This document shows, piece by piece, positions 2,398 to 64,000 of a stretch of DNA of 64,000 nt. Under the pieces are notes generated by a model. The model worked only from the letters and a program-made list of their open reading frames with translations, did no database searches and was not told the DNA's origin. Source of the stretch: Laetmonice hystrix (taxonomy: Eukaryota); NCBI GenBank assembly GCA_965235115.1, contig OZ249445.1, positions 806,001 to 870,000 of the forward strand. The letters are read 5' to 3'. Position 1 is the stretch's first letter; each line of letters starts with the position of its first letter. The position numbers and the translations under genes are program-made.

Positions 2398-2636
2398 TTC
2401 CTGGTAGAGTAGTTCTGAGGTAGCTACACAGTGAAATCATGTTTCTTATTATTCTTAGTCAAGGATACCACATCTATAGAAGATGTTTTATTTAAGTATA
2501 CTTAAAGCCATTGTTGGTCAAATGTTGTGGACAGAGTGCTTATGTTGAGGCCACCAGACTAAATGTTTTGATATTTTTTTTTGTGAGCTGATGCAGTAAT
2601 AAAGACTGATTGATATAATGATATTGATGTTTACAG

Positions 2637-5600
2637 ATGACGATGCTGGCCCCGGTATTGACCAGGACGATGGTGACATCGTGTTTGTGAAGACGAGCCA
2701 GCTCCCTGTCAGCCCTATATGTATCAAGACAGACGATGAGGATGACGAGGAGGACATAATCTTTGTGTCTGTCACCAAACCTCGCATTCTGTCCGAGCCG
2801 GATACACCCACCTGGGACGTGGTCAAACCCAGACTCAACTCGCCGCTACCCGGACACGATGTGGCGGTCAAGGAGAGTCTGGACGGGTCACTGGACAGTA
2901 AAGATGGAGGTTTTAGAGTCCGGCAATCACAGGACGATACACACTCGAACAACTTGCCGATCGACATGACTGTAGGGGAGAGTAACAACAGTAAAACACA
3001 GCGGGCTGGGGGTAGTGTGTACGCTACGCTCCCGGACCACCCAGCCCCTAGTACCACAAAAGGTGGTGGGGGAACGGAAGACAATACGCTCCCAGACCTG
3101 CACCCAGCCCCTATTTCTATAAAAGGGGCCAGGGTGACGGAGGACAATACGCTCCCAGACCTACATCCGGCCCCTATTTCTATAAAAGGGGCCAAGGGGC
3201 CGGAGGACAATACACTTCCAGACCTGCATCCGGCCCCTATTTCTATAAAAGGGGCCAGGGTGACGGAGGACAATACGCTTCCAGACCTGCATCCGGCCCC
3301 TATTTCTATAAAAGGGGCCAGGGGGACAGAGGACAATACGCTCCCAGACCTACATCCGGCCTCCATGACTGTGTGTGATGATATCCTCAACACCAACAAA
3401 ACCCCAACTAGTATGCTTTGTGGCCAACAGGCGGATACAACCCGCTCACAGCTAGGGGGCAGCACCAACTCGGCAGGCGTGATAGGAGGAGAAAGAAACA
3501 GCACTGTCGAAGAGCTGCAAGCATTCCTCCCAGATCTTTTCATTGAGAACGATGGTGTTGCACGGGGCACAACATGGGATAGTGGTCAAGGTGCTGGGGG
3601 TCCGCTCCTGGCCTCCAGGGCGGTCGCTGGGACATCGACCTCGACGACGGTCAGTGCTACGAGCAGTGGTCAGTCTAATGCTATAGACTTAGCCAGGACT
3701 CCCAGAATGGTGCTTTCAGTCTCGGATATATTAAACAGTGGTAGTGGCACTGACGCGGTGTCCACAAGTGATAGGAGTACATTTATCACTTCCATATTCA
3801 GTGACGCACTGAATGCTACAGGTGTGACGGGAAGTCTTGGTGCCAATCGTGTCAGTGATAGCGGCACTGGTGACTCCAGCAATACTTCAGGTGTGATAAC
3901 GTTACCAACCTCATCATCTTCTACATCCTTCTCATCATCATCATCATCATCGTCATCATCAAGCACAGCATCTTCTCAGCCGCAGCCCTTGTCGTCAAGT
4001 TTCCCACTCGCCTGCTCCACCTCCCTGCCGAGTGACTTGGCTGGTGTCATCCCCCAGCCCCTCACATCTACGATAAGTCCCTGCGTCCTCCCACTACATC
4101 ATGTCTCTGCTGACCAGTCGTCACGGCCGAGCCTGCTGGTTGTTCCCACAGTTTCCTCTTCTTCCTGCCTTGGAACGTCGCTCAGCCCCACCCAGCAGTC
4201 GAGTGGACTCCCCTCACAAAGTCATGTCAGCTTCACTGCCGGTAATCCATCATTGGGTAGTCTGACCACTAAACCCCGCGTCGGATCCAGTCACAGTGTC
4301 CCGTCATCTCCAGTCGCTATAGTACAGCCAGTCTTCAAGCGTAGTGTTTCCTACATGCAATCCGATCCAAATCAAAACCATATTCCACTGAAGAAAAGAA
4401 AACGTTTACAACGGCGCACCGCAAAAACTGCCGGCGACTCAACCAACACAGCAGTCAGCCTCCAGACAGGAGGCAGTAAGTGTTCGTTTTGCCAGAATCT
4501 GGTGTGTTTCTCGAGGCTTTCACACTGCCTCCAGGGTCACGGCTGCTGCGGAGACTGCCTACAACAGAAGGTCAAGACCTTACTGTCCAAGGCCAAGCAG
4601 GTGCGTCTTACATTATGTAGACTTCACAGTTAGGGCTCCACAACCCTAACAAGGCAACTTTTTTCAGGGATCTTAATAATTATGTGTTTAAAGTGCATAA
4701 ATAATAGATGTATTTAGAAAGGAAATATGAGAGTGGGCTAATGAATATTTATGTCATGATTCAGTAATTTAATACAGTCTTGACCTACTTCAAATTTTAA
4801 GTCCTTTAACTACTCTGTTGAAATTGTGAATTGCCAAGTGTAGTGGTCGTTGTGGTCCTGTGTACAGTGTACGTGAACATTGCCTATAATATTCCAGGGC
4901 TCCTTGAAGTGTCCTCTCACGTCGTGCGCAAGCTACTTCCCAATGAGTAAGTATCCTGTTCAAAACAGGTTCCTCTAATTAACACACTCCTTCTATTAAC
5001 ACTCTTCCTTCCATACAGTGTTTGTGATTGGATGCCCTCAGTTGTTGCAATGTTTGTGATTGGATGCCCTCAGTTGTTGCAATGTTTGTGATTGGATGCC
5101 AGGTAGTTGTTAGAATGTTTGTGATTGGAAGCCAGCACTTGTTACAATGTTTGTGATTGGATGGCAGTTAGTTGTTACAATGTTTGTGATTGGATGCCAG
5201 GTAGTTGTTACAATGTTTGTGATTGGATGGCAGTTAGTTGTTAGAATGTTTGTGATTGGATGCCAGGTAGTTGTTACAATGTTTGTGATTGGATGCCAGG
5301 TAGTTGTTACAATGTTTGTGATTGGATGCCAGGTAGTTGTTACAATGTTTGTGATTGGATGCCAGTTAGTTGTTACAGTGTTTGTGATTGGATGCCCTCA
5401 GTTGTTACAATGTTTGTGATTGGATGCCCTCAGTTGTTACAATGTTTGTGATTGGATGCCCTCAGTTGTTACAATGTTTGTGATTGGATGCCAGGCAGTT
5501 GTTAGAATGTTTGTGATTGGATGCCAGTTAGTTGTTACAATGTTTGTGATTGGATGCCCTCAGTTGTTACAATGTTTGTGATTGGATGCCAGGCAGTTGT

Positions 5601-8600
5601 TGCAATGTTTGTGATTGGATGCCAGTTAGTTGTTAGAATGTTTGTGATTGGATGGCAGTTAGTTGTTAGAATGTTTGTGATTGGATGGCAGTTAGTTGTT
5701 AGAATGTTTGTGATTGGATGCCAGGCAGTTGTTACAATGTTTGTGATTGGATGGCAGTTAGTTGTTAGAATGTATGTGATTGGATGCCCTCAGTTGTTAG
5801 AATGTTTGTGATCGGATGCCAGGCAGTTGTTACAATGTTTGTGATTGGATGCCAGGCAGTTGTTAGAATGTTTGTGATTGGATGGCAGTTAGTTGTTAGA
5901 ATGTTTGTGATTGGAAGCCAGCACTTGTTACAATGATTATGACAATGTTTTTGATTGGATGCAGGCCAGCTCCAGCAGACCCTGCCTCCCATGGTGGTGG
6001 AGATCCTCGAGGAGAAGCTGGACCGTGAATACATTGACTACGCAGCTGACCTCGTCTGGCAGAACCTCGGCGAGTCGTCAGGTGGCCGAGGTGGTGAGGA
6101 TGAGGACGAGGATGATGTGGAGACAGACACTGAGACGGGAGAGGGCGGAGAGTCAGTGGCTGGTCTTAGTAAGGAGCCAAGCTTGGTGGCCTTGCCGTCA
6201 CACTGGGACCCCATGGACGACCCCTCGGTAAGGCCCTTCCTATCATGTTCACGGCAGACAAGCCAATGACAAGGCACTCTTTTAGGGAAAATCTTTATCA
6301 GGCTCGGCAGTATCTCAAATCAGGCAGGTTCACCGGACGGTTCGTGTGGGGTTCACATTGACTCTGTATTGGTGTGTGTTCACATTGACCATGTTCCATT
6401 GTCTGACTCTGTATTGGTGTGTGTTCACATTGACCATGTTCCATTGTCTGACTCTGTATTGGTGTGTGTTCACATTGACCATGTTCCATTGTCTGACTCT
6501 GTATTGGTGTGTGTGTGTTCACATTGACCATGTTCCATTGTCTGACTCTGTATTGGTGTGTGTTCACATTGACCATGTTCCATTGTCTGACTCTGTATTG
6601 GTGTGTGTTCACATTGACCATGTTCCATTGTCTGACTCTGTATTGGTGTGTGGGGGGTTCACATTGACCATGTTCCATTGTCTGACTCTGTATTGGTGTG
6701 TGTTCACATTGACCATGTTCCATTGTCTGACTCTGTATTGGTGTGTGTTCACATTGACCATGTTCCATTGTCTGACTCTGTATTGGTGTGTGTTCACATT
6801 GACCATGTTCCATTGTCTGACTCTGTATTGGTGTGTGTTCACATTGACCATGTTCCATTGTCTAACTCTGTATTGGTGTGTGTTCACATTGACCATGTTC
6901 CATTGTCTGACTCTGTATTGGTGTGTGTTCACACTGACCATGTTCCATTGTCTGACTCTGTATTGGTGTGTGTGTGTGTGTGGTGTGTGTTCACATTGAC
7001 CATGTTCCATTGTCTGACTCTGTATTGGTGTGTGTTCACATTGACCATGTTCCATTGTCTGACTCTGTATTGGTGTGTGTTCACATTGACCATGTTCCAT
7101 TGTCTGACTCTGTATTGGTGTGTGTTCACATTGACCATGTTCCATTGTCTGACTCTGTATTGGTGTGTGTTCACATTGACCATGTTCCATTGTCTGACTC
7201 TGTATTGGTGTGTGTTCACATTGACCATGTTCCATTGTCTGACTCTGTATTGGTGTGTGTTCACATTGACCATGTTTCATTGTCTGACTCTGTATTGGTG
7301 TGTGTTCACATTGACCATGTTCCATTGTCTGACTCTGTATTGGTGTGTGTTCACATTGACCATGTTTCATTGTCTGACTCTGTATTGGTGTGTGTTCACA
7401 TTGACCATGTTCCATTGTCTGACTCTGTATTGGTGTGTGTTCACATTGACCATGTTCCATTGTCTGACTCTGTGTTGGTGTGTGTTCACATTGACCATGT
7501 TCCATTGTCTGACTCTGTATTGGTGTGTGTTCACATTGACCATGTTCCATTGTCTGACTCTGTATTGGTGTGTGTTCACACAGGGTTTCAAGAAGGTGAC
7601 ACTCGTGGAAGGCAGTGTAGAGTATGAGGAGATATTTAACTCCTTTGACCTTTCCATGGGTTCCCGCTATAACAGAATTATCAGCATCAGTCGCATTCAA
7701 AACCCAATTCTCTGGCAATTCTACAGCATGTGAGTACTTTGTTTATTCTCAGATCCAACCTTTAGATAGTAAACAAAACTTGGCTCAAAGACAAAGTATT
7801 TGAACAAAAGAAAGAAGTTTAAGAAAAGAATAATTTTGACCCTGCTTAACGTGGGCAGCGGGGCTGTGTGTGTGTGGTGTTTAGTGCAGTGACTCAGACT
7901 TAAACAGACTGTTGTTTGGGGTCCGCAGGAGGCGGATGCAGATGGTTATGGAGAATGGTGGAGAAGCGGTACTGGAGAAACAACTTTGTCATGGGACGAG
8001 TAACAACGTTGTTGACGCCATCTGTAAATCTAACTTTGACTGGCGCCTGTGTGGAGCTCACGGGACTCTCTATGGACAAGGTAATATCTCAATGACAGGT
8101 GGGCTAAGGATGTCATGGTTGTTTCGGTAATTGTATAGACTCACATTGTTTATGTGATAATTTTGTTTGTGTTTACCTGTTTTGCCACCAAAGAGACTTG
8201 ATAAGGAGCTGCCTTGATGTGAATGTAGCTTTTGGTGAAGTTTGAGGTTGATGATTGTCAATTACCACACTTAATTAAGAAATCTGTATTTGTAATCATG
8301 TTCAGGGTCGTACTTTGCCCGTGATGCCGCGTACTCACACCTGTACACGGACAATGCTCGCAGCTACTCGCAGCAGGCCAGACTACGTCGGCAGACCCAG
8401 CAGATGTACCAGCTACGCCTTCAGTATGTCCAGGACTTTCACAATCAGCGGCAGAGACAGAGACATCAGCCGCTCACCGCTCTCCTACCCAAACCACCCC
8501 CGGCCCACCAGAAGGCTGCGCGGCCCTCATCCTCCTCCACCTCCGCCGCAGGCCAACTCGCAAACTCTCAGTCCCAGACTGCAGGCCTATTCACAACAGG

Positions 8601-8982
8601 TTCGCTGAAGTCAGCCCAACCAGTTCCTGTGGCCAGTACCAGTACGGGTTTGGTGGGTTCGGGACCCTCAAACAATCGACTCATGATGTTAGCAAGTCTT
8701 CTTGGTGGTGTATACAGTCAGAACTCCACAGACCTCACCGCTCAGAAGTTGAACTTTCATAGCATGTTCATTGCCAAGGTACTCGTCGGTCAGTACACAC
8801 ACGGCAAAACCCAGTACCGTAAACCGCCGCCGTTAGATGTCAACCAGCCGTTTGGCAGGTGCTATGATACTTGCGTTGACAACATCTGTGAACCAAAGAT
8901 ATTTGTGGTGTTTGACAGTGCTCAGAGCTATCCCGAGTACCTGATAGAATATACCACGGTCGTCTCTCAGTCCGGTGTATAG
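2637..8982 (+). CDS. SIM- and RING-containing PARP12/TIPARP-like mono-ADP-ribosyltransferase (5' end uncertain)
   Basis: Exons 2637-4600, 4898-4946, 5965-6227, 7584-7729, 7929-8080, 8306-8982, all GT-AG and phase-consistent. RING: CSFC-x11-C-x3-H-x2-C-x2-C-x18-CPLTSC, split over exons 1-2. PARP motifs: LPSHWDPM, RIQNPILWQFY, LCHGT, NFDWRLCGAHGTLYGQGSYFARDAAYSH, MFIAKVLVG, YDTCVDN, PKIFVVF, QSYPEYLIEY. The 2637 acceptor is phase 1, so an upstream exon is probably missing; an in-frame ATG at 2618 is the alternative. Confidence 0.88.
3074..3363 (+). repeat. Coding tandem repeat, 63 bp / 21 aa x5 (TEDNTLPDLHPAPISIKGARV)
   Basis: Directly visible in ORF 2618-4633, in frame, inside the disordered N-terminal region. 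Confidence 0.95.
5019..5962. repeat. 32/33-bp intronic minisatellite, ~28 copies, ending in the exon acceptor
   Basis: Unit tgtttgtgattggatgccaggtagttgttacaa with variants; the last degenerate copy supplies tttttgattggatgcag|5965. Confidence 0.95.
6344..7580. repeat. 45-bp intronic minisatellite, ~27 copies, abutting the acceptor at 7583
   Basis: Unit ctctgtattggtgtgtgttcacattgaccatgttccattgtctga; contains no AG on the sense strand. Confidence 0.97.
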
Positions 8983-9155
8983 GTAATACGTGTGTCGATA
9001 GGGTACAGGGTGGTAATGACAACAGGGACCCAACCCACCATAACCCGAGTACCTGATAGAATATACGACGGTCGTGTCTCAGTCCGGTGTATAGGTAATA
9101 CGTGTGTCGATAGGGTACAAGGTGGTAATGACAACAGGGACCCAACCCATCATAA
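8932..9155. repeat. 112-bp direct duplication spanning the PARP stop codon
   Basis: cccgagtacctgatagaata...caccataa at 8932 and again at 9044; the second copy repeats PEYLIEY-coding sequence in the 3' UTR. Confidence 0.9.
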
Positions 9156-10260
9156 CCAACATGATGTTCCCCGCTGCAATAACAGCTGTCGAGGCTTGAC
9201 CGATGTGCAAGTAACCACGAATTTTCTTTTGTTTTCTCATTAAGTTATTAAAATAGAATATCATCCATAGTCGTGCTGTTATTACTGCCAAACATTTGTA
9301 TACCAGTATGATGTATAACGAAGATGATGGTGAGAAATATCTTTGGTTTGTGGTGGATACGTGTGTTACATTGTGTCACCTACTGGCAGTTGTTTGGACG
9401 GTACGAGCATGGGGAGTCATGCAGGCCGTCAATGGTTACGTCGCTATGCACAGGTTATTGTGTTGAAGTATGTCAGTCTAAGCCAGCTGGCGGCTCGGAG
9501 AGGCTCATCGTGTAGTTAACGCTGTCGACATGTCTCAGAGAGACTTCAAACGTAAAATATACCATGTCTTAACTGGACTGAGGGATTCTACCGAGTGTTG
9601 ATGGTGCAAAAAGTCTGTTTGAGGCTTTCTTGTTGATTTTATGTAGTGTCCAGGTCGTTTGCTATCTATAGATTGCTTCATCTAATTTGTTAAACACAAG
9701 ATGTTGTACGAACTTATTTATTGCATAATGTTTCACATCTACACAATGCTCCGGACTTGTAGAGGTTTGAGGGGCAGTATATGATGTTGGTTTTCTTGAT
9801 AAAACTGGCAAAAAAAAAAGCTGGCAAAAAAACCAAAACCAAAAAAATTGTTATTGTGCTTTTAGTTTAGGCTTTAGTTGAATCTGGTAAAGCTGATGAT
9901 TTATAATTTTGAAAATCAATGAAAAAAGGATTGCTTACTGAGTAAATATATAGTGATTTTAAAATCCATTACCATATGGGATGGTATTTGAGTTGTTGTG
10001 AATGGTACGGTGGATAGAGGAGATGTATACCAATATTGTAATAGAGATATACATCTGTACATTAGACAGGGTTACGGTACGCAAGGAGAGAATGCAGGAA
10101 GAAAAACAAATGATGTCATATTATCTTTTGGTTAAAAATCGTAAACGTTGGCAAAGCTACAGGCCTCTTCAAATTCTACAACCCTTTAGATGTTCAACTT
10201 CCTTTCCAACCCAAGATGTCTGCAAGCTCTTGAACTTTGTGACGACGAGGAGCAATTTAC

Positions 10261-10700
10261 CCAACGTGTCCGGAGTATCATTTACCGAACGTGTCCGGAG
10301 TATCATTTACCGAACGTGTCCGGAGTATCATTTACCGAACGTGTCCGGAGTATCATTTACCGAACGTGTCCGGAGTATCATTTACCGAACGTGTCCGGAG
10401 TATCATTTACCGAACGTGTCCGGAGTATCATTTACCGAACGTGTCCGGAGTATCATTTACCCAACGTGTCCGGAGTATCATTTACTGAACGTGTCTGGAG
10501 TATAATTTACCTAACGTGTCCGGAGTATCATTTACCTAACGTGTCCGCAGTATCATTTACCTAACGTGTCCGGAGTATCATTTACCCATCGTGTAGCCAG
10601 TGTCATTTACCCATCATGTAAAGAGTATCACCCATCATGTAGCAAGTGTCATCACGTAGTATCATTTATCTCTGTGTCATTTATCTCATGTAAGGATTAC
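10261..10700. repeat. 25-bp minisatellite, ~13 good copies decaying to the right
   Basis: Unit cgaacgtgtccggagtatcatttac. Confidence 0.95.
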
Positions 10701-11259
10701 CATTTACCCATTGTTGGCGGTAAATGCCCTTCATAAGGAGTGCCATTTACCCACCAGGCAGAGCTCATGAGTGGTTCAATCAAGGTAGTCTAACGTATGC
10801 CGATAATGTAGCCTTGAATGGATGGGGATATTCTTAGTTTCTAATTTATTGCTTTAAAAAGAGATCTTTGTGGTCAACCATCTTTGAATCTGTAACCTTG
10901 TGCTTGTTTATATGGAACATTTTGTATTCAGATAGTTACCTTGCCATTAGGAGAAACGGTTGAAATGTGACATGAAATGTTCCATATGTTTGGTAATGTG
11001 ACCAGATGTTGAAAATGGCGGGATTCCAAGACATTTCCCGGTAACAGCAAACAGGTGGAGCAGTTGTGATTCTGCAAGAAAACGCACCATGAATTAGAGA
11101 AAAGATGGTTTGCTGGCACTTTATGAGTAGGGCAGATGGAGTAAAAACGTGTGAAGTTGATGAGTACATTTAAATGAGAATTAATCATGACGTTTGTTGG
11201 AACGCACGAGCTGACTGCGACGTGATCGATGTCGTCTGCCCTTGTAGTTGTGTTCTCCT

Positions 11260-11275
11260 CCACCAGAGGGCGTTA
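11260..11275 (+). promoter_or_regulatory. CTCF-like motif (intergenic)
   Basis: CCACCAGAGGGCGTTA matches the CCASYAGRKGGCRS core; further similar motifs at 12511 and 13876. Motif match only. Confidence 0.4.
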
Positions 11276-11523
11276 GTGCATTACCTTAAATCTCCTCATT
11301 GTGGGATATGATGGCACAAGTGATAGAAGACTGTGCCAGAATGACATGCTTGGAGTAATATAAAATATGTGATTAGTCGGTGCTGTACGGTAAGGCGGCG
11401 TGGGGACCAACAACTCCATGCATACTGTCTGACCATCAACGGATTTGATCATTGCAACGCTTTGATATCAGATAAAACACTTATTTCATGTCCAATGTTG
11501 ACATGTGTACATACATGTGAGAG

Positions 11524-25733: not shown

Positions 25734-34361
<8,628 letters not shown>

Positions 34362-36367: not shown

Positions 36368-39300
36368 ATGGCATCAGGAGAGTCTGTTAAAGTTATTGTG
36401 CGATGTCGTCCCATGAACACCAGGGAGCGAGATCTTCGCTGCAAGGATGTTGTCCAGATGGATGGCAGCAGAGGCCAGTGTTCCATACGAAACCCCAATG
36501 ACTCCAAAGCACCCCCCAAAACATTCACTTTTGATGGAGCCTACTTTGTGGACTCCACCACAGAACAGATCTATGCTGATATTGGATTTCCACTGGTTGA
36601 GGTATGTTCCTAATTATACTAACTTATAAATAAAGGACTTTACACAATGGAATTTTTTAGTTTGTGCATTCTTTTTGTATGCTACATGTAACTGTCATTT
36701 TCACAAGTTATAGTAAACTGTATTTGTGAAAGGTCAGAGTAATTTTATCCTTATTTTAATTTCTACTAAATGTTACATGGTTTTCAAGGCCAGATATTGC
36801 CCTTCCATACATGCAGCTGTAACTGACTGTGATTTCTAGGGTGTGATAGAAGGCTACAATGGCACAATATTTGCATACGGACAAACTGGCTGTGGCAAGT
36901 CCTTCTCCATGCAGGGCATCACTGATCCTTCAACACAAAAAGGCATTATCCCAAGGTTAGTTAAACCTGCAATTAACGAGCCTACAACCAGGCTTTAAAT
37001 TTTAATGATAATAATTGGTTTGTTTTAGTTATTATTGTGAGCACTGTAGGTCATAGAAGGTGGAATTCTGTTATTGTGAGCACTGTAGGTCATAGAAGGT
37101 GGAATTCTGTTATTGTGAGCACTGTAGGTCATAGAAGGTAGAATTCTGTTATTGTGAGCACTGTAGGTCATAGAAGGTGGAATTCTGTTATTGTGAGCAC
37201 TGTAGGTCATAGAAGGTGGAATTCTGTTATTGTGAGCACTGTAGGTCATAGAAGGTGGAATTCTGTTATTGTGAGCACTGTAGGTCATAGAAGGTCGAAT
37301 TCTGTTATTGTGAGCACTGTAGGTCATAGAAAGTGGAATTCTGTTATTGTGAGCACTGTAGGTCATAGAAGGTAGAATTCTGTTATTGTGAGCACTGTAG
37401 GTCATAGAAGGTGGAATTCTGTTATTGTGAGCACTGTAGGTCATAGAAGGTAGAATTCTGTTATTGTGAGCACTGTAGGTCATAGAAGGTAGAATTCTGT
37501 TATTGTGAGCACTGTAGGTCATAGAAGGTGGAATTCTGTTATTGTGAGCACTGTAGGTCATAGAAGGTAGAATTCTGTTATTGTGAGCACTGTAGGTCAT
37601 AGAAGGTAGAATTCTGTTATTGTGAGCACTGTAGGTCATAGAAGGTGGAATTCTGTTATTGTGAATGCAAGATCTTATTGAAAGTGTATTGTCCAAAAGC
37701 CTGAGTACTTAGCAATGAAATTTAATGCATGTTTACTGTTACTGTGTTTCACATTGTTGCCTGACAACATAGCAACATGTAGATATTGATTGGACTTGTG
37801 CAAATGTTTCTAACCACTAGAAAAAAATCTGGGTATAACACAGAGCTGTCGCCTGGCAGTCTTTCTAATGCAGAAGTCATCAGATTTAAAAATTCATATT
37901 TGAATAATATTTCTCTGAACTATTTAGAGTTTGACAATCTAGACTTCGTCTGATACTCCGATGGTATGACTGCTATAGAAACCCCACCTCACCCAAGTTG
38001 AGGAAGGAAAAATCTATGAGGCACTAAACTGTGAATCAATACACCATGAATAAACCAGCCAGGTGGAGGTAGTGTAAATATTGTGGGAGCCACAGTTATC
38101 ATTGAGGGATTATCCAATCATTGTGACATGATGGAAGGTCAGCCTCACAGCGATGGGTGACACGGTAGTTAGTCCCGGATTCATGAAGAAATTGTTTGTC
38201 CATCGCGGAGATGTGTTACACTGACATTTAGTGTGAGCATTGTGTGTTAGAATAACGCGTCCAGTATGCAGGTCGAAATATAGTTTTAAATTGATGTAAG
38301 ATGTGCAATGTTACTGTTAGTAAATAAGATCAAAAGGAAGGAGATGAATTCCTTTGGATTTTATATTCCAACCTTCAATAATTCAATTGAATTGTCCTTT
38401 TAAAGTGTCCTCAGTGCATGCTGTTACTGTTAGCTCACTTCTGACTAAGGACTTGGCCTCATTTTATATATTTATGGAGTCCCTCCCTACCACATTAATT
38501 TTTGATTTTTTTTAGACCATTTGTCACATCATGATTATTCATGAAAGAGGAGTACAGTACATGTATTGACGTTTTATGTCGTGAGCCATGTTTTAAAATT
38601 ACACCCTAGAACTAAACAGGAGTATTCTGACCTACAAAAAAAGGCATGCTGAAAGGAAGCATTTACATTGTATATAACATTATGTAGACTTGCTGGCTGG
38701 AGTGTGTCAGGGATGTATGAATGACACATACTGATACCTGACCAGTGTATACCAAACTCCCACTTGTTTTGTTAAGAAATCTATGTAAATTAAAGTCCAC
38801 ATCCCTCGCGCATAAAGTGTGCACATGTGGAAATAATAAAATAATATTTAGTCAAGTGTGGGGGCGTGTGTACACCACTACATGAAGAGACATGTATGTA
38901 ACAACCCATTACCTAATGAAGCAGTCAAAGTCCTTGCAGTGTGCCAGGACTTTTCAAATGAAATGGTATTAGATATTCTGTGACATGAATGTAAGTAATT
39001 TTCTCTCGATCTGTTTTCTGACAGAGCCTTTACACACATCTTTGATACAATCTCAGTGTTGGATAACGTTAGATGCCTGGTCCATGCATCATACTTGGAG
39101 ATTTACAATGAAGAGATCCGGGATTTACTTGGGAAGAATGTCAAAGATAAACTGGAGTTAAAGGAACACCCAGACAGGGGTGTATATGTCCAGAGTGAGT
39201 AGATGTTTGTGTATTCACCAGGAACTAATCTCTGATAACTGCAGATAGAGTAAATCAGAAATAAACTAGAACTGAGGAGAAATGGGTTTTAACTGTCAAC

Positions 39301-42300
39301 CATCAGGTAGTCGTGCATTGAGGCAGTAACTTTTTCTCTGACTTTTTCAGATCTTTCAATGCACTTGGCTAAAAGTGTACAGGACTGTGAGAAAATCATG
39401 TCTCTGGGTTGGAAGAACCGATCAACAGGATCGACCCTGATGAATGCTGACTCCTCGCGGAGTCATTCCATTTTCACCATTCACCTGGAGCGGGCCGAGA
39501 CTGATGACGCAGGAGAGGAGCACATCAGGGCGGCCAAGTTAAATTTAGTAGATCTGGCCGGGAGTGAGCGTCAAGCCAAGACAGGTCAGTCATTTATGTC
39601 ACTCGCGCAGAGTTCCTGGAGCTGCCAATGGTCCGAGACTGCTGCATGCTCATACCTACTTCCAGTTTCTCTACTTCTCTCTATATGTCTCCTTCTCTCT
39701 GCATCTTTCTCTCTCTAATCCTGACGGTCTCTATACTTTCTATAGAGAATGTTTACAGAGAAATATGTTTCAGATAAAGACGACCTTGTTACAGAATGAT
39801 GTGGAGATCATGAGGTTTACTGTGACATTGGCTTTATGTTTGAATATTTTAGGAGCCACTGGTGATCGTTTAAAAGAAGCCACAAAGATCAACTTGTCAC
39901 TGTCGGCCCTGGGTAATGTTATCTCAGCTTTGGTTGATGGCAAGTCAAAGCACATTCCATACAGAGACTCCAAACTTACACGACTTTTACAAGATTCACT
40001 GGGAGGGAACACCAAGACGTTAATGGTGGCGTGTTTATCACCAGCCGACAATAATTATGATGAAACCTTGAGCACTCTTAGATATGCCAACCGCGCCAAG
40101 AACATCAAGAACAAACCCAAGATTAATGAGGACCCAAAAGATGCACTGTTAAGAGAATATCAGGAAGAGATCGCCCGTCTCAAAGCCATGCTCAAGGGCG
40201 AGATTCCCATCGATGTCGAAGGTGAGTTTTTGTTGTCAGTAAACTCGGGACTGTGTCAGGGTTGAAGCTCAGTCCTCGGACAGGTTTGGTTATTGTGTTA
40301 GTTTACTGCTTACCTCATGTGTTCTGTTGTGAATAGAATGCTACAAGTTGCTGAGATAACTGTAAAGATAAATCATATTGCTGATAGATGAAATCATCGA
40401 CTGGTTAGAAGTTGAGCAAACACACTCTGGCTGTAGTATATATATAAAAGTTCTGCTTGTCTCATGTAGAGATGGCTCGCCACATGGGTATGTATCGCAT
40501 TCAGTATGTCTCTGTAAGGTTACAGACACTCATCACATATCTTAGGAACCTCTCATACACAATCTCTTTTCAATTCTCGATTTTTAGTATTGTAATAGTT
40601 TGTCCACATCCTCTTCTCCATTGTTGCCGCAGCCTTCTCAACATTACAAGTTCAGTCATGAATGGGGGAACAGGGAGATTTATTTTCTATTGGTCACCTA
40701 CTTCATGCAGCCCTTAGATCACTTCCATAAATTTCGGACAAAAAAAAATCTGCCTATATCTCCACAGTTTTCAAAGTATTTTTGAAAGCCTTTCAAAATC
40801 TTACAGTTTCTGTATTGGATCTTTGGTACAATCATTGATAAAGAAAATTGCTATTTGTTTTAGATTAATTAAGTGTGATTGATTAATTTAAATTTGATGT
40901 TAAATTTGTGATGGTTGAATGATGGTTTCAGTACTACCAGGACATCTCAATAAATTGTTGAAGAAACAGATAGGTACTTGACGACGTTTATCAGTATTCA
41001 AACAATGTCATGACACGGTGAAAACAAAGTACTAGAACTGTAGATTACACATATTGTCACTCCATTATCATGCCATATATCAGTGGTATATCAGTCATAA
41101 TACACTGTAACGACTAGGGTATAATACATACTATCACAGTTAATGTGGACATTATACAAGTATATTTTTAACAGAAAAAGTGGCAATCCCTTGGCACTGC
41201 GGCACAGATAATGATAATATTGTCTTACTGTGACAGGTCATCGTTTGTACCAGATCCACGCTCTCAGTTGGTTCCTCTGTTATATCCTTGGTAGACCTTA
41301 ACCTATTGTAACAAATAGTGCAGCCTAGACTGTGTAACATACTACTTCATAGACAAGTTTATATCGTGACCAAACTAGAGTATATCAAAGTGATACAACC
41401 GTGCTTGAACTGCTGATAGCAGGATGTTGAGGACATAGGCAGGGGGGGGGGGATAATCTCAAATATTCTGTGATCTCGAATGGAATAAATTTGAATTTCT
41501 CTAGTCATGGTAAAGAGTCATGTGTACAAAAGTTCAATGTTAGAAGTTCATTCAAAGTACTAGTAGAGTAGTTACCATTGAACGTTTGCATCACTGCTCT
41601 TTGGAAACAGAAAATGATAAAAAAAACCCACATGAGATGAGAGAGGGTAATCTGACAATCTCTGTATTGACCGTGAACTATAGGTTTGTGATTACAAACG
41701 TATTCTACATTCTTGACTTGATGCTGATCTTATAATAGAGCAGTAACAGTCAGCTATAGTAGCGTATATGTGTAGTCTGTAGTGAATCCATGATCTTTCT
41801 CATTTACTCATAATCAAATAAGAAATAGCCAAGAAATAGCTTGTAGATTTATAACAATAAGATGGATATATGTACAGTCGGCTAGGAATACAGGTTTCTT
41901 GATATTATCTTTCCAGGACGATCACTTTGTAATTATGTCTATAGATCCAAGAAAGACTCGTTTCTCCAATGCTCAGGATTGTCCAAAAGAACTTTTTCTA
42001 TATCTTTCACGCTGATGAAACACTTTGTAATTCTTCTTTTTGAAGTGGGGGAAGAAAGTATATTTGACCTGAAATATGATAATGCTTTGAAGAAGGTGAA
42101 AAATACAAGGATGAAAAAACGTGATCAAAGTGAGTTTGGGATACTTAAGTAAATGTATGATTTTATTTGTGCCGAGACTAAAGAACTGATTGTGCTGCAG
42201 GTGCGGCAGGCGGGATTGGAGTTCCTGGGAGTGGAGCCTCTCCACACGTCGTAGAAAAGGTTGTCCATGTGGCAGACGAACAGACGCTGGAGCTTGAAAA

Positions 42301-56378: not shown

Positions 56379-58464
56379 TAATGTCCTTAGATACTGATGT
56401 AGTCGTAGTTTGTTACTGGTAGGAAATGATACTGTCAATCCGTCCAGGTTTGCCTGTTGTTAGCAAAGAATCAAGGTATGAGTAGAAGGTGCCTTGCCTG
56501 AGTGGCAAGGGGTAAATTACTGACGACAAAATGATGTTCAATGAAAAGGTGATAAAGATATTCAATCAAACAGTTTGTGATAATATGCGAGGACCAATTT
56601 ATACCTATGGCAGTCAGGGTTTTTATGTGATGTTAGTTAAAGTAGGGCCACAGAGGACCATATTTGGGATACTTGGAATATTTAGGTGTGACAGTGGTGT
56701 ATTTCTTGTGAACACTTCAGTATTGAGGTAGGCTTAGTATGCAGTAACTGCAATAACAGGATGTGAAACTCGAAATGTACAATATTATGTGAAAGTATTC
56801 CAGAAACTTGGCGGGATTCTATGGAGTAGTTGCAGACTTATTGACTGCATTTGGAAGGAGATATGTTTATAAGGTCAAAGATTTATCATGTTCCCTGTTC
56901 CCAATTGTAAAAATCTTTCTGCTCCTGTGGGTAAAGAATTGAACAACTAACTTGAATGCAGCGTTTAAATGTGGCGTCCCACTTGTTGGAACCTGACGCC
57001 GGCTCGTTGTCGGGCCCGCCAGGAGATGGCGCTGTAAACAGGGGGTACGGGTATTCCATGTGTGTCCATCATTCCACATCCGAGTTCTCTGGGATGTTAT
57101 GGTATAGAAGGTGTATCAATAGTCATCGTAATGGACGACTCGTAAAAATCTTGTTCTCCATGGTGGCAGCACTGTCGCACCGGTCCTCGCTCCAACGTAG
57201 CACAAGCTTAGATAGGACGAGGAAACGCCAAGCTGTGTCCAGATGTGTTAAAACTTTTTGGCATGGAAAATTACAATGTGTAGGGCTTCCTGAACTATAG
57301 AACCTTTAAATGTTACTATATTTCCTGATAATTACAGTTACGGGATCCAGGCATAGATTAGAACTTCGTCGTCCTATCCAAACTATGCTGATGTACTACA
57401 GCAGGGACTGGTACGACAGTGCTGCCGCCAGCAGGCGGATGTGCCTGGAATACCCCATTGCCTTGAGTCTGCCATTAGCTCTTGCAAGATAGACTTGCAT
57501 GTTTTAAAATCTGTCTGGCGTGATTTGTGAACTGTGATAACGCATTTATTATTTTCTGTTGTCTAGAAGTGATATGAAGATATGATATACAGCATTTGTT
57601 CTGTGCCGTACAGTTAACTAGATATATAGAGATCAGCATATCATTGATACTGGGAATTGCCGCTGGATGGCGCTCAAATACCAGAACCAGAGTCATAGCA
57701 AGAAACGGGCGGGGGGGGGGGGGGGGGGGGGGAGTGGTAGGCCATGGTTGTGTAGGTTGAGTTTGGTCATTTTCTTGTAGTGGGTGTAGCACCCCACGAC
57801 ACCATAAAACCTCTTGACAGACCTCCGGTGGATTTGAAAACATAATTTATGTATTGAGGATATGTTAGTAAAGTCATTCATGAAACCTCACCTTGGCTCT
57901 CATATTAGTGTACGCTCTTTCTAAGAAAAGGCAAACTAAAGCTTGTATTAAAAAAAAGAATAACCTGAATTACTTGAGTATTTTAGTGTTTCTATTTACA
58001 TAATATATAATGAAGAAAATGGTCTGGGACGACCCAGAAAAATTCTCTTCATTTGCATTGTACTGAGTATAATTTATTGTGTGCATGGCCTGGGGCCATG
58101 AATAGTTCTTATTGTGGTAAACGAAAACTTGCAATATGTAGAGCTGCATACAGAGTACAAAAATATGCACTTGTTCCATGTACCGGTAATGTATGGCTTG
58201 TAAATGATATAAAAACGATATTGTCATAGCAGTGTCGTTGTAAACAAAATCTGGAAGGACCCTGTGCCTTGGAAGGAGTCAATGGGTTCCAGTATTTTGG
58301 ATAAGGTCAGAAGACCCTTTTCCGTCCAGAAAGAATTTTGTGAAATATCCGAGATCCGAGGTGAGATAGGTAGTGGGTGGGAGGATAGGTGGTCGGAAGA
58401 TCCCCTGCTTGTGTGATAGGTGTGACATTCATATGGTGCTGTGCGTGATACACATCGAAACAGA

Positions 58465-59330
58465 TGATGTGTGGTAGAAAGTTGATTGTAAGGATATAGC
58501 AGCTGGATGTAATCTGTGTCTCCGTGTGTGGTAGAAAGTTGATTGTAAGGATAGCAGCTGGATGTAATCTGTGTGGTAGAAAGTTGATTGTAAGGATATA
58601 GCAGCTGGATGTAATCTGTGTGGTAGAAAGTTGATTGTAAGGATAGCAGCTGGATGTAATCTGTGTGGTAGAAAGTTGATTGTAAGGATAGCAGCTGGAT
58701 GTAATCTGTGTGGTAGAAAGTTGATTGTAAGGATAGCAGCTGGATGTAATCTGTGTGGTAGAATGTTGATTGTAAGGATAGCAGCTGGATGTAATCTGTG
58801 TCTTAGTGTGTGGTAGAAAGTTGATTGTAAGGATAGCAGCTGGATGTAATCTGTGTGGTAGAAAGTTGATTGTAAGGATAGCAGCTGGATGTAATCTGTG
58901 TGGTAGAAAGTTGATTGTAAGGATAGCAGCTGGATGTAATCTGTGTGGTAGAAAGTTGATTGTAAGGATAGCAGCTGGATGTAATCTGTGTGGTAGAAAG
59001 TTGATTGTAAGGATAGCAGCTGGATGTAATCTGTGTGGTAGAAAGTTGATTGTAAGGAGAGCAGCTGGATGTAATCTGTGTGGTAGAAAGTTGATTGTAA
59101 GGATAGCAGCTGGATGTAATCTGTAGAAAGTTGATTGTAAGGATAGCAGCTGGATGTAATCTGTGTGGTAGAAAGTTGATTGTAAGGATAGTAGCTGGAT
59201 GTAACCTGTGTGGTAGAAAGTTGATTGTAAGGATAGCAGCTGGATGTAATCTGTGTGGTAGAAAGTTGATTGTAAGGATAGCAGCTGGATGTAATCTGTG
59301 TGGTAGAAAGTTGATCGTAAGGATAGCAGC
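58465..59330. repeat. 45-bp minisatellite, ~19 copies
   Basis: Unit gtgtggtagaaagttgattgtaaggatagcagctggatgtaatct with small indels. Confidence 0.96.
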
Positions 59331-59554
59331 TGCAAACAACGATCGAGTTGCATCACGGGGCAGGCTATCAAGGAAAATGACCGGGTATATATTATGTGGG
59401 TCTCTGAAAGAAAACAATGAACCTTTCATTGAGAATCTATTTATCTATTGTTTAGGGATCTTTGTGTGCAGGCACATATTTTTAGCCACACGATTTCAGC
59501 ATTCATCGTTTCCTTGTCCTTGTGTGGCACGAAATGTAGATTTCATGTTTACCC

Positions 59555-59985
59555 GCTAATTGACCCGGTTACGGTTGAGGATGCAAACCGCTAATTGACC
59601 CGGTTACGGTTGAGGGATGCAAACCGCTAATTGACCCGGTTACGGTTGAGGATGCAAACCGCTAATTGACCCGGTTACGGTTGAGGGATGCAAACCGCTA
59701 ATTGACCCGGTTACGGTTGAGGGATGCAAACCGCTAATTGACCCGGTTACGGTTGAGGGATGCAAACCGCTAATTGACCCGGTTACGGTTGAGGGATGCA
59801 AACCGCTAATTGACCCGGTTACGGTTGAGGGATGCAAACCGCTAATTGACCCGGTTACGGTTGAGGGATGCAAACCGCTAAATGACCCGGTTACGGTTGA
59901 GGGATGCAAACCGCTAATTGACCCGGTTACGGTTGAGGGATGCAAACCGCTAATTGACCCGGTTACGGTTGAGGGATGCAAACCC
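59555..59985. repeat. 36-bp minisatellite, ~12 copies
   Basis: Unit ccgctaattgacccggttacggttgagggatgcaaa. Confidence 0.96.
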
Positions 59986-60259
59986 AATTTTCACGTCAGA
60001 GTGGTTTATTTAAACAAAACGTCTTTCATGTTTTCATGTAAGGTGGTAAATAAAAGAGACATTTAACAGATCAGAAAGTGTTTATTACATCTCTTACATA
60101 TAAAGGCACGACTGTTAGAACCCCCCCCCCCCCGGAAACTTGTGAAGAATGTGACCTGATCGATCCCGCAAACTACATGATTACTGCATTTCCAAACTTG
60201 CTATATTTTTATGATTTTTAGGGGGTGTGGTGGTGGTGGGGGGGGGGGGTTGATGTGCT

Positions 60260-60905
60260 GATGTCGGAAGTTTATTTGGACCATAACATGGCGCCGTGTT
60301 GTCCGTGGACGATGACCCCGGGAAACACAACCTGAATCATCACGCCATCTGTTGGCATACGCCAGTGTGGGCCAACACGGCCAGTATACCGCAACGCCTG
60401 CTGGCGGAAATTTTGTGAACCCTGAAATGAATTTCCTGTCTGCAAACTTTCACCAGAGGTCGCTTTTGCCCTAGAGTACGGGCATGCGCAGTTTGATAAA
60501 ACCTACTGAGAACGGATCGATTGGGGATCGTAACATGTGCATGTGAAGGTGGTTTGATGAACATGACGCCGTCGACATCTTCTTTCTTGCCATTATTTAT
60601 GCTAAAATGTCACGAGGACGTTCAATATAATTCATATTTTGGGAACTTTTTCTAACCGCACGGCAGGATACGCGTAGTAATAAAAGACGGATTCGTACAG
60701 TGATTTACCGGAGTTAGTGTAGTTCCCACTTAAACCGCTAGGTGTCAGGCCGTAATTTGAGTTCAGAGTTTAAACGATAGATGGCAGCACAGCCTGTTTG
60801 ACGTCATAGTGTGGTGACGTCAGACGGCAGGCCCGGCAGCGTGTTGAGACATGCGAGGGGGTTCCCGCCTCATATTGATGAGCCACCCGTGGTATATAAG
60901 GGCAG
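60260..60905 (+). promoter_or_regulatory. Candidate promoter of the ET-like gene
   Basis: ETS-like CGGAAGT (~60265), YY1-like AACATGGCG (~60283), two TGACGTCA (60799, 60815) and TATATAAG (60893-60900), followed by a candidate non-coding exon ending aaacag|gtaagg (61141). Confidence 0.5.
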
Positions 60906-61442
60906 GCGCCGCTACTTCAACCACACACTGCCGAGACGGATCACAACGATTGCTACTCAGCCCTGGGTTGTATTACATCGACTGCTGGCTCCGAGTGGTA
61001 TGACAGTACTTAGGCATACTATAGCAGGCCGATCTAGACTTCTATAACCGAGACCAGCCTACACTACACTCTACAGACTTGGCCCTGCAGCAGGCTATAT
61101 AGGCCTGGCCTACAGCGCTATTTCCTTTCGGACTTAAACAGGTAAGGATTTAAACGGGCGCCGACATTCCTACCGTTCCGTTGATAAAGATATCCATTGG
61201 TCCACAGAAAATAAATTTATGATGTTCAAAGGCTTTTATAGATAGGCCTATAGGCAGACACGCCCCCCCCCTCCAAGCACAAACACAGAATTTCAAGGCA
61301 GGCCTACGTTAATTATATGGCTACCTAGGCCTAGGCTTAGATCATCATATCTATGTTGTCCTAATTTGATGTGTGTTGATGTTACAGGGTGATGTTTTCC
61401 TCCAGTGACCTTACTCCGCTGCTGTCTGACGGACTGTGGAGG

Positions 61443-63484
61443 ATGCCCGCCCTGGAGCAGGCCGTCACTGACCCGTACTTGTGTCCACCACCCATCGTGC
61501 TGTCCCCCATACCGTCGTTTGACTGCTATCATATCCTCAGACGGATCCCCACAGAGCAGGTCACTCCTCCCGGCGGGTCGGGCCTGGACACGCCGCCCGT
61601 CACCTCCAGGGACTCGGCCGTCTTTGTCAACATGGTCATGGACCGGCTGGCAAGAGGGCTCACCGCCACCCTGGAGGACGCTGAGGTTGTGGTGGAAGAG
61701 GGTGGTGACCTGGGAGGTCAGACAGACAAGTCAGGAGTTTCACCCCTCGCTACCCCACCCGTCATCACCCGTCTGTCCACTGTGCCACTCTGCCTTCTCC
61801 CACCAGGCGGCGCTGCGGACGACCAAACCTCCGACCCGAGTGACGACTGTAGAGTCTCAATGGCGGCGTCCTACCTTAGCGCTGTGACCACTCAGGAAAC
61901 ACATTCCCTCGAGACGGGTTCCTTGTCAAGGTCATCGACCCTGACCCTGCCGGACGGTGACAGGCCATGTGACATGTCGGTTCCGTCGCTGTTGACAAGG
62001 GACGCCAGCGGTGACACGCTGTCCCCACCACATAACTTTGATCCAGCGGTGGTTAACCGGTGGAACGCTGCAGACTGCTCTCCTGCGGCGCCCGTTACAC
62101 ATGACGTCACACAAACAATGCCACTAAGTTTGGTTATACCTCGAAATAACTCTGAAAGGTCTACGCAAATCAGGAAAAAGCGTTCCAAGAAGAGCGTAGA
62201 TCGTGTGAGATTTAACACTTTGGTTAAAGTTAACACAGCGGGAAAGGCTGTACTTGCACCGAAAGTGTCGCCATCTACAGGAAAGAGGCGGCCTCTGACG
62301 TCACGAGTACCTGCAAACAGCGGGCAGACAACTGTGACGTCACGATCACCTGCAAACAGCGGGCGCACAACTGTGACGTCACGATCACCTGCAAACAGCC
62401 GGCGCACAACTGTGACGTCACAATCACCTGCAAACAGCCGGCGCACAACTGTGACGTCACAATCACCTGCAAACAGCAGGCAGACAAATGTGACGTCACG
62501 ATCCCCTGCAAACAGCGGGCAGACAACTGTGACGTCACGATCACCTGCAAACAGCGGGCAGACAACTGTGACGTCACGATCACCTGCAAACAGCGGCAGA
62601 CGGTCAAGTCGAAGTCGGCGCAGCACGGTAATCGTGAAAACATGGTCGCTGCGACCGAGGACAATGAGACAATGCAATCTTGTGGGAGAATCTAAATCAG
62701 AACAGGTAAGAGCAAATTTGTGTTCTCATTAGATTATGAGTAGACTCTAGCATGAAGTATTTAGTATGTTCAATCCTAGTTTAAGTTTCTTAAGGTGTCC
62801 CTGTACACGACGGTTGATAATTTCCGAATATATAAAATCTATATAGGCTACCCGTAAAATTAAAAGGTATAATCAAAGGAATTTTACGCTTTACAGAAAT
62901 CGAAGTCCATAAAAACGACTTTGCCAAGAGTACCCCGGGAGAGAATGAGCCCTGCACAGTTTACATTAGAGACCTGTCTACCGTGGACATCCTGGCAACT
63001 AGGGATTGCAGCCGAACCACCCAAAAAGGGCCGCGCCAATTGGTCAATGAGGCGTTCTGTAACCGGCGATTTTATTGGCTTCCACAACAATAAACTGTTT
63101 CGAGAAACGAGACAGAGGGGCTCAGCTATGTATGAAGTGGCAGTGCAGGATGCACGTAGTTGTAAGAAGAAAGTCGTCTACTACCACACAACGCTGGGCT
63201 CCGAGCTGGACCGGTCCTGGGATCTGGTTATCTTCAAAAACAAACCCCATGTCGTCAGGCAGGTGGATGACGTCATACGTCATGGCTGTAAGGTGTACGT
63301 TCGACGCGCCGTCCTCTCCGCCAATCAAATCGTGTGTAACATAGAGCGAAGGAAGACTGTGGTGCGGAGTCTGAGTGCACTGAGGACGCTCATTAAGAGA
63401 TCATACGATTACGCGTGGAACGAACGCCGGGAGGACCGTGTGAACATTCGTGGCGGGTTGACATTATCAAACGACACACTCTGA
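61443..63484 (+). CDS. Long disordered protein with a C-terminal ET/HRT-like (GIY-YIG-related) domain, ~616 aa
   Basis: Exon 61406-62705 (acceptor ttttcctccag, first in-frame ATG inside the exon at 61443, donor cag|gtaaga) joins in phase 0 to exon 62897-63484 (tttacag|AAA), fusing ORFs 61389-62732 and 62921-63484. C-terminal motifs SWQLGI, AMYEVAV, VVYYHT, DDVIRHGCKVYVRRA, YDYAWN; basic patch IRKKRSKK. Confidence 0.7.
62310..62597 (+). repeat. Coding 39-bp / 13-aa repeat x~7 (SPANSGQTTVTSR)
   Basis: In frame within the 447-aa ORF; each unit contains GTGACGTCAC. Confidence 0.93.
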
Positions 63485-63792
63485 TTATTGTTGTCAGAAT
63501 AATTTAATATACTGCAAGCATGTGAATTTTACGTCGGGAACGGAGGGTTTCATTCTGCTCTCTGGTAATCATGATCATTAATTATGTGCACTGGTTTATA
63601 TACAAGTATACCCCTACCATTTTCACGTGCAAATCATGATCCTAATAAAATGAATCTCTTCAATCCAAAGTTTACAGACTTTTTCCTTATTGAGATTCCT
63701 GATATATATTCGTGTGGTGACCCCCGTTTGGTGCGGTTTTCCTATAGTAAATCCCCATTGTATTCAACTCCTGGATCAGCCCGCCATGTTGT

Positions 63793-64000
63793 TGTGGGCA
63801 TAGCTTATCTCTGAGCTCTCAGAGATAAGCTATGCCCACAGCTTATCTCTGAACTTATCTCTGAGCTTATCTCTGAGCTTATCTCCGAGCTCTCAGAGAT
63901 AAGCTATGCCCACAGCTTATCTCTGAGCTCTCAGAGATAAGCTCAGAGATAAGCTCAGAGATAAGCTCAGAGATAAGCTCAGGGATAAGCTCAGAGATAA
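63793..64000. repeat. Palindromic 12-bp (ctcagagataag) array, truncated by the window end
   Basis: 23-bp-arm hairpin tgtgggcatagcttatctctgag-ct-ctcagagataagctatgcccaca (63793-63840), then units in both orientations. Confidence 0.9.

Follow-up and report, generated by a model that had tools for sequence, protein, structure and literature searches.

How does an animal come to carry a domain known from plant regulators, and what might it do there? The question is raised by a gene in a 64,000-nt stretch of the Laetmonice hystrix genome (NCBI GenBank assembly GCA_965235115.1, contig OZ249445.1, positions 806,001 to 870,000 of the forward strand), called the window below and numbered from its first nucleotide. 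A first-pass annotation, made from the letters alone, had noticed near the end of the window an intron-containing gene whose GIY-YIG domain resembled that of the plant EFFECTOR OF TRANSCRIPTION (ET) proteins and was probably nuclease-dead. ET genes have been described as 'exclusively found in plants', and their products as having a GIY-YIG domain that nicks DNA and C-terminal ET repeats; they are regarded as regulators, epigenetic or in repair, that only plants possess (PMC6585611). The explanation that we find best, and likely when taken as a whole, is that of an expressed animal gene encoding an ET/PF19239/T4-EndoII-like GIY-YIG domain, a diverged paralogue in which the domain would serve as a binding module.

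Is the locus a real gene? It has two + strand open reading frames (ORFs), 61389..62732 and 62921..63484, which had been proposed to join through a phase-0 GT-AG intron from 62705 to 62897, and the genomic sequence and a spliced contig agree on this. The donor is CAG/GTAAGA with GT at 62706, and the acceptor is TTTACAG/AAA with AG at 62895-62896. The start was misplaced in the first-pass annotation: 61406 is out of frame, while the frame opens at 61380 directly 3' of a TGA and has its first in-frame ATG at 61392. The predicted product is 438 + 195 = 633 aa, the earlier figure of about 616 being slightly low, and the domain makes up its C-terminal residues 439-633. Four public runs from one sample (X1-X4) were compared with the window, none of them recorded as RNA. 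The coverage of X1-X3 takes in exons, intron and flanks alike, which is a genomic DNA pattern. The coverage of X4 is patchy and confined to 61431-62701 and 62893-63629, with depth zero in the intron and in both flanks; it stops before the AATAAA at 63644..63649. One 872-nt X4 contig omits 191 nt with GT..AG ends and is placeable at 62705/62897 (a '+4' offset), the junction that had been predicted. From this exon-only pattern we infer that X4 is derived from transcripts. Of the variants between contigs in exon A, 14 are synonymous and 9 nonsynonymous, where 27% synonymous would be expected (binomial p 6e-4; pN/pS about 0.24); in exon B, 4 are synonymous and 5 nonsynonymous (pN/pS about 0.39). 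Since these variants are mostly synonymous, both exons are taken to be translated in the frames given here and to be under constraint. The locus is thus a real, spliced animal gene, and it is expressed, as the RNA-like run X4 indicates.

What kind of domain does the gene encode? The whole of it lies within a single exon, exon B, where a compact C-terminal domain of about 190 aa had been expected and 195 aa are found, residues 11-191 being folded (residues of the domain are numbered here within exon B). Residues 11-64 form an N-terminal extension with the invariant W30 and W33, and residues 77-175 form the GIY-YIG core. A single-sequence search with the domain gave no useful match in Pfam or PDB, a PDB profile search with an alignment of 81 relatives (A2) returned chance ribosomal matches only, an ESM Atlas feature search gave no usable match, and the PADLOC defence models gave none at all. 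The structure was more informative. AlphaFold2 on alignment A2 reached a pLDDT of 90.8 and a pTM of 0.87, compared with an unusable pLDDT of 39 when only a two-sequence alignment was supplied. In a Foldseek search of this model against PDB, T4 EndoII (probability 0.99) and then Hpy188I rank highest. A scan of 48,161 chains with VIA-align, independent of Foldseek, gives the same leader, its top five being EndoII (Z 7.3; 120 residues, model residues 15-177), Hpy188I (4.3), PD-T4-3 (4.1), the UvrC N-terminal domain (4.0; model 62-176 to chain 1-89) and I-TevI (3.9; model 75-178 to chain 2-93). Lower in the VIA-align ranking are Eco29kI and the N-terminal domain of AtGRXS16, and among its 16 best rows 7 are GIY-YIG enzymes. 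Against 550,129 Swiss-Prot models, Foldseek puts Arabidopsis ET3 and ET2 at ranks 1 and 2, both with probability 1.00; the ET2 alignment covers query residues 11-176 and ET2 residues 15-178, and so takes in the W-x2-W N-terminal extension. Among AlphaFold DB clusters the order runs from VWFA or uncharacterised proteins (E 1e-12 to 2e-8) to plant proteins, named 'EFFECTOR OF TRANSCRIPTION 2-like' or 'GIY-YIG domain-containing', and then to bacterial GIY-YIG proteins.

The link to a curated family comes from the relatives. Matches to Pfam PF19239 (GIY_YIG_domain) at E <= 1 were found for 28 of the 81 relatives, the best at E 6.5e-8, and four exceed the curated cut-off of 21.4 bits (P0026 with 28.8, P0089 with 26.2, P0071 with 25.1 and P0068 with 23.0 bits). 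The PF19239 model itself finds no match in this genome or in the control genomes. The membership of the window protein is therefore transitive and not direct, because its own sequence falls short of the profile. Two structural aligners and a curated profile nevertheless agree, and for this reason the ET/GIY-YIG assignment is supported; the fold and the ET likeness proposed earlier both hold, the second with this indirect link.

Is the gene then an ET gene? The reference entries for comparison are Arabidopsis ET2 (F4K933) and ET3 (Q9FJT6), together with PF19239. Among the Swiss-Prot models none matches the window domain better in structure than the ET proteins (TM by query 0.48), and the N-terminal extension is shared. 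They differ from the window protein in several respects: identity to the window domain is only 14-16%, the domain is N-terminal in ET proteins and C-terminal here, the host is an animal, and the Cys-rich ET repeats, which bind zinc and DNA at the C-terminus of ET proteins, are missing. The absence of these repeats had been noted before, and it is borne out by the composition of the whole protein, in which 11 Cys and 8 His among 633 aa form no C-x2-C or spaced Cys/His pattern. Without ET repeats, and with its domain at the opposite end, the gene is not an ET protein gene. Among the solved structures T4 EndoII (DenA, PDB 2wsh), the best match, has the same order of a Tyr on strand 1, a Tyr on strand 2, an Arg on strand 3 (FYARQ) and a W-N ending, while identity to the solved nucleases (EndoII, Hpy188I, UvrC, I-TevI and Eco29kI) is 8-13% and the window domain has an extra beta-hairpin at residues 145-156. 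As for the GIY-YIG superfamily in general, the window protein shares both motif Tyr, the C-terminal Asn and the alpha/beta fold, in which a beta-hairpin with the two Tyr motifs is followed by a helix, a third strand and a helix ending at the Asn motif, and it lacks the Glu and a PF01541 match.

If it is not an ET gene, to which family does it belong? The closest homologue is P0001, a protein of 197 aa without stops and with 55% identity, on a 645-kb eukaryote-like contig (ENA ERZ26222911); the family-invariant residues within the alignment of the two are all among the identical columns. Simple sequence searches were insensitive, giving 1, 3 and 14 proteins; the only named one among them is P0123 (Lottia gigantea). 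Searching 1.84 billion representatives with a profile of two sequences gave 127 clusters at E <= 1e-3, 51 of them at E <= 1e-10. All members with a name are molluscan, from the genera Potamilus, Pecten, Littorina, Haliotis, Lymnaea, Gigantopelta, Batillaria, Nucella and Lottia. They are uncharacterised proteins, labelled 'uncharacterized', 'hypothetical', 'VWFA domain-containing' or, in one case, 'CCDC71-like'. One candidate, P0117 (Amia, 5 stretches, E 2e-4), was set aside, its match being apparently driven by internal repeats. In an ESM Atlas cluster of 123 members, 79% bear a VWA domain and Mollusca is the commonest phylum. The long members run from a VWA domain through a conserved A-Y-E-K-E-V-R-x-R-E-G element and a basic linker to the domain; in P0091, P0102 and P0119 the domain is N-terminal and a long disordered tail follows. 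The molluscan VWFA or uncharacterised proteins of Lymnaea (A0AAV2H023), Haliotis (XP_071118228) and Potamilus (KAK3602915) have a homologous C-terminal domain with the same signature residues, and the family signatures W-S-x-W, Y-E-x-A-V-Q, V-R-R-A and Y-D-Y-A-W are all present in the window domain. Unlike the VWA-linked family, the window gene lacks the VWA domain and linker, and its N-terminal 438 aa are unrelated and unique. The family is an undescribed and mostly molluscan one, whose usual form is an intracellular VWA domain with a basic linker and the domain, and because it carries the ET-type domain, this domain is not specific to plants. As a separate observation, three VWA-linked members (P0004, P0012 and P0023) end, C-terminally of the domain, in short C-x-C-x2-C motifs (for example QCNCVMCW ... 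QCSCIMCW), a possible small zinc-binding tail that is absent from the window protein.

The genome holds four copies of the domain, one in the window and the others at C10:20.22 Mb, C5:16.73 Mb and C5:7.81 Mb; the second of these others lies at C5:16725529-16726089. Each of the three paralogues has two VWA exons, a linker exon and a domain exon inside about 2.5 kb, and their domains are 34-40% identical to the window domain (E 1e-15 to 2e-19); other family members map onto exon B by tblastn at E 1e-7 to 1e-17. All four domain exons (loci L003, L008 and L009, and the window at 62896/62897) start directly after AG, in phase 0 and 12-13 codons before R-E, with the same intron ahead of them. Since intron position and phase match in all four genes, the exon structure is shared by descent. 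No VWA exon and no A-Y-E-K-E-V-R linker exon was found anywhere in the 64-kb window. In a quick maximum-likelihood tree the window protein and P0001 pair with 100% support on a long stem (0.76), within a group that also holds VWA-linked members and is poorly resolved (fork support 81%). This placement indicates that the window gene is a derived VWA-less lineage older than the split from the species of P0001. Two further ORFs were observed on the P0001 contig: one of 193 aa ends 175 nt before the P0001 ORF, a spacing near that of the 191-nt intron, and may be the tail of an exon-A counterpart, and another of 197 aa, about 5 kb upstream, may represent the domain exon duplicated in tandem.

Could the domain still cut DNA? 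In GIY-YIG nucleases the canonical catalytic residues include an Arg in the helix after strand 2 (R27 in I-TevI, R57 in EndoII) and, in the last helix, a metal-binding Glu (E75 in I-TevI, E76 in UvrC, E118 in EndoII). Five motifs had been quoted from this locus as colinear with ET2, and all are present in exon B (WTSWQLGI, SAMYEVAV, VYYHTT, QVDDVIRHGCKVYVRRA and RSYDYAWN). Column counts below refer to alignment A2. The GIY Tyr, Y79 (Y in 77/81), matches Y6 of I-TevI by the VIA-align range and the Tyr of the EndoII VIY motif, and E80 next to it is E in 81/81. The Tyr at the YIG position, Y95, is Y in only 41/81. R136 is invariant (R in 81/81). Near the C-terminus, W174 is found in 81/81, Y172 in 80/81 and D171 in 70/81 (86%), and N175, in a column with N in 19/81 and R in 24, lines up with N90 of I-TevI, N88 of UvrC and N130 of EndoII. 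The candidate helix Arg, R106, lies 11 residues after Y95 (the EndoII spacing is 10), in a column that is R in only 18/81. The residues invariant across all 81 sequences, W30, W33, E80, R136 and W174, are not the canonical catalytic set. As for the Glu, the positions that align with it read S160-A161-L162-R163, and there is no acidic residue at 159-163, as the first reading of the sequence had suspected. Across the family column 161 is E in 30, K in 16, A in 9 and D in 9, thus acidic in 39/81, and column 163, the canonical Glu column that faces E118 of EndoII, is R in 37 and K in 11, thus basic in 48/81. Column 161, Ala in the window protein, is Glu in all three genome paralogues. The canonical Glu is thus absent from the aligned positions of the window protein and weakly conserved family-wide, and this residue pattern favours a non-canonical role.

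What took the place of the VWA domain? Exon A encodes, as had been described, a body rich in Ser, Thr and Pro (S 14.6%, T 11.9%, P 9.6%, with R 9.1%) and a basic patch resembling a nuclear localisation signal (NLS), RKKRSKK. A Pfam search recognised no domain in it, it has no similarity to the N-termini of family members, and a search of the genome found no second copy, only the match to itself. Its 39-bp tandem repeat encodes SPANSG(R/Q)TTVTSR units, followed by GRRSSRSRRS, and appears at the protein level as eight 13-aa repeats. An antisense ORF of 261 aa (61892-62677, - strand) spans this repeat and is a by-product of it; the + frame is favoured over it because of the pattern of synonymous variants.

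Taken together, these features suggest the following scenario. In the window gene the place of the VWA exons is taken by a lineage-specific disordered exon, rich in S, T, P and R, with the NLS-like patch and the 13-aa repeats. The basic patch and the RS-like repeats point to a nuclear protein, and its domain would bind DNA by analogy with the superfamily and the ET proteins. The domain keeps the scaffold, both motif tyrosines and the Asn and has lost the metal-binding Glu; its role would most likely be to bind or recruit, rather than to nick DNA in the canonical way. No canonical nicking activity is to be expected since the metal-binding Glu is missing. The product is probably a nuclear DNA-binding protein without the canonical cutting mechanism; that the module is altogether non-catalytic has, in our estimate, about even chances. 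Several points weigh against this scenario. Nuclear location and DNA binding are predicted properties, and the RNA nature of X4 comes from its exon-only coverage, not from its record. The window domain has no PF19239 or PF01541 match even at E 10. The gene is at least two coding exons long, its 5' end is not fixed by the data, and the AG at 61386-61387 could be the acceptor for an upstream exon. An hhalign comparison of A2 with the EndoII family (T4 denA and five homologues from phage records) spans the whole core in the expected register, with a gap at R106, and is illustrative only, as it is not significant (E 0.026, probability 1.9%), nor is the comparison with EndoII alone; a comparison with I-TevI was discarded because the alignment was meaningless. 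The residue mapping thus rests on structural ranges and a weak alignment. Finally, the loss of the canonical Glu is no proof of lost activity, and E80, R136 and Y172, which are invariant in the family apart from one sequence at Y172, may form a non-canonical active site together with D171.

This last point leads to the main rival, an active nuclease with a shifted site in which E80, D171/Y172 and R136/R181 would replace the canonical Glu and Arg and DNA would still be nicked or cut, as reported for the plant ET2 domain. Over 81 diverged sequences E80, R136 and W174 never vary and Y79, Y172 and R181 hardly do, a conservation stronger than a mere scaffold usually requires. The window protein also keeps Y79, Y95, N175 and the candidate R106, and for the ET2 domain complementation of the UvrC nicking domain has been reported (Ivanov 2008, cited in PMC6585611). 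This explanation has to face the columns themselves, since the Glu column is basic in more than half of the sequences, column 161 is acidic in just 39, the window protein has no acidic residue at 159-163, and the helix-1 Arg varies across the family. We regard it as unlikely, yet far from negligible. The other rival is a decaying or chimeric duplicate without function, in which a copy of the domain exon would have come to lie beside low-complexity sequence unrelated to it, its spliced transcript being noise. It would account for the absence of the VWA exons that all three paralogues have, for an exon A without homologue in the searched sequences and with a young 39-bp repeat (94% matches), for the lost catalytic Glu, and for the long stem of the window and P0001 pair. 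What it does not account for is that both exons stay open, over 438 and 195 codons, and are joined in frame in a contig that resembles a transcript, that both have a synonymous excess, at p 6e-4 in exon A, and that the same VWA-less type of domain is kept at 55% identity without stops in another assembly. A functionless duplicate is thus very improbable, and the diverged binding module stays the preferred explanation. A link to Penelope-like elements, which also carry a GIY-YIG domain, was rejected too: those elements form tandem units of about 5.6 kb with 759-aa ORFs and match PF01541, while the window domain does not. The features of the gene are collected in the table.

Features of the gene in the window. 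Residues of the domain are numbered within exon B, and the last column gives the illustrative, non-significant hhalign register with the EndoII family.
Feature	Position	Strand	Basis	EndoII counterpart
Exon A, coding part, 438 aa	61392..62705	+	ORF and translation	
NLS-like basic patch RKKRSKK, protein residues 261-267	62172..62192	+	regular expression on translation	
39-bp tandem repeat, 7.9 copies	62296..62601	+	Tandem Repeats Finder, 94% matches	
Intron, 191 nt, GT-AG, phase 0	62706..62896	+	sequence, X4 contig, paralogue introns	
Exon B, 195 codons and TGA stop	62897..63484	+	translation, homologues, AlphaFold2 model	
Folded domain, residues 11-191	62927..63469	+	model secondary structure and confidence; ranges to ET2, EndoII, UvrC and I-TevI; column statistics	
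Y79-E80, Tyr of 'GIY' (here AMY)	63131..63136	+	column counts, alignments	A-M-Y79 to V-I-Y
Y95-Y96-H97, 'YIG' position (here YYH)	63179..63187	+	aligned to EndoII VYIG	V-Y95-Y-H to V-Y-I-G
R136-R137, strand beta-3	63302..63307	+	R136 aligns with Arg of EndoII FYARQ	V-Y-V-R136-R to F-Y-A-R-Q
S160-A161-L162-R163, helix positions of the canonical metal-binding Glu	63374..63385	+	VIA-align offsets, hhalign	R163 to E118
Signature Y170-D171-Y172-A173-W174-N175	63404..63421	+	column statistics, alignments	A-W-N175 to P-W-N130
AATAAA, putative polyadenylation signal, 160 nt 3' of the stop	63644..63649	+	pattern search	

Several repeats were noticed in the window. At 60734-60850, about 117 nt long and 540 nt upstream of the ATG, the summed depth of X1-X3 is about 4,750-11,450 compared with about 35-65 nearby, and contigs break there at 60790/60804; this is a very high-copy repeat. 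Just 3' of the gene, 63802-64000 is an array of the 12-mer AGCTTATCTCTG and its reverse complement, with periods of 12, 38 and 74, which forms long palindromic units and in which the window ends. Minisatellites at 58307-59987, 6298-7733, 25982-26884 and 37025-37696, with units such as LHPAAILTINFLPHR and GLHPSTVTGSIS, contain long spurious ORFs on both strands. Elsewhere in the window, 39564-40265 (+) is an exon for the C-terminal third of a kinesin motor domain (PF00225, E 1.2e-38), the ORF 8404-8982 (+) has at its end a weak similarity, below the cut-off, to the PARP catalytic domain (PF00644, E 3e-4), and the ORF 2618-4633 (+), of 671 aa, has internal repeats, a Cys-rich C-terminus and no Pfam match. 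In the genome at large, at least 126 PF01541 matches are spread over many contigs (for example C7:18340570-18374328, C21:23120155-23170389 and C6:37009-75592). Most of them have an identical 36-bit score, a spacing of about 5.58 kb and ORFs up to 759 aa, and by these features the arrays look like tandem Penelope-like retroelements unrelated to the ET-type domain.

There is a final question, what does the gene mean for the biology of the family? The full-text literature that we searched holds no description of an animal ET-type GIY-YIG domain, VWA-linked or molluscan, and the GIY-YIG superfamily census of 2006 lists no such animal family (PMC1564403). Databases already label a few animal proteins 'GIY-YIG domain-containing' (AlphaFold DB clusters), so the ET-type domain outside plants is implicit in databases and absent from the searched literature. 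The finding places the ET domain subtype in animals in two architectures not described in that literature, one with a VWA domain and the other with a disordered region ahead of it. The animal family offers an outgroup for finding which ET residues matter, and the Glu-bearing paralogues and the Glu-less copy in one genome are a natural pair for the nuclease question. It is also a candidate nuclear or genome-defence family in molluscs, the named members of which are uncharacterised. One joint reading, which we put forward as speculative and on balance doubtful, is that a patchily distributed ET-type module is shared by bacteria, cyanobacteria, plants and marine invertebrates, that the molluscan VWA family may sense and nick damaged or foreign DNA, and that the Glu-less offshoots may be regulators or decoys. 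If this is true, the expanded molluscan VWA fusion family would be a nuclear system for sensing DNA damage or foreign DNA and for nicking, and the copies without VWA and Glu, such as the one in the window, would be non-catalytic regulators or decoys of their active paralogues.

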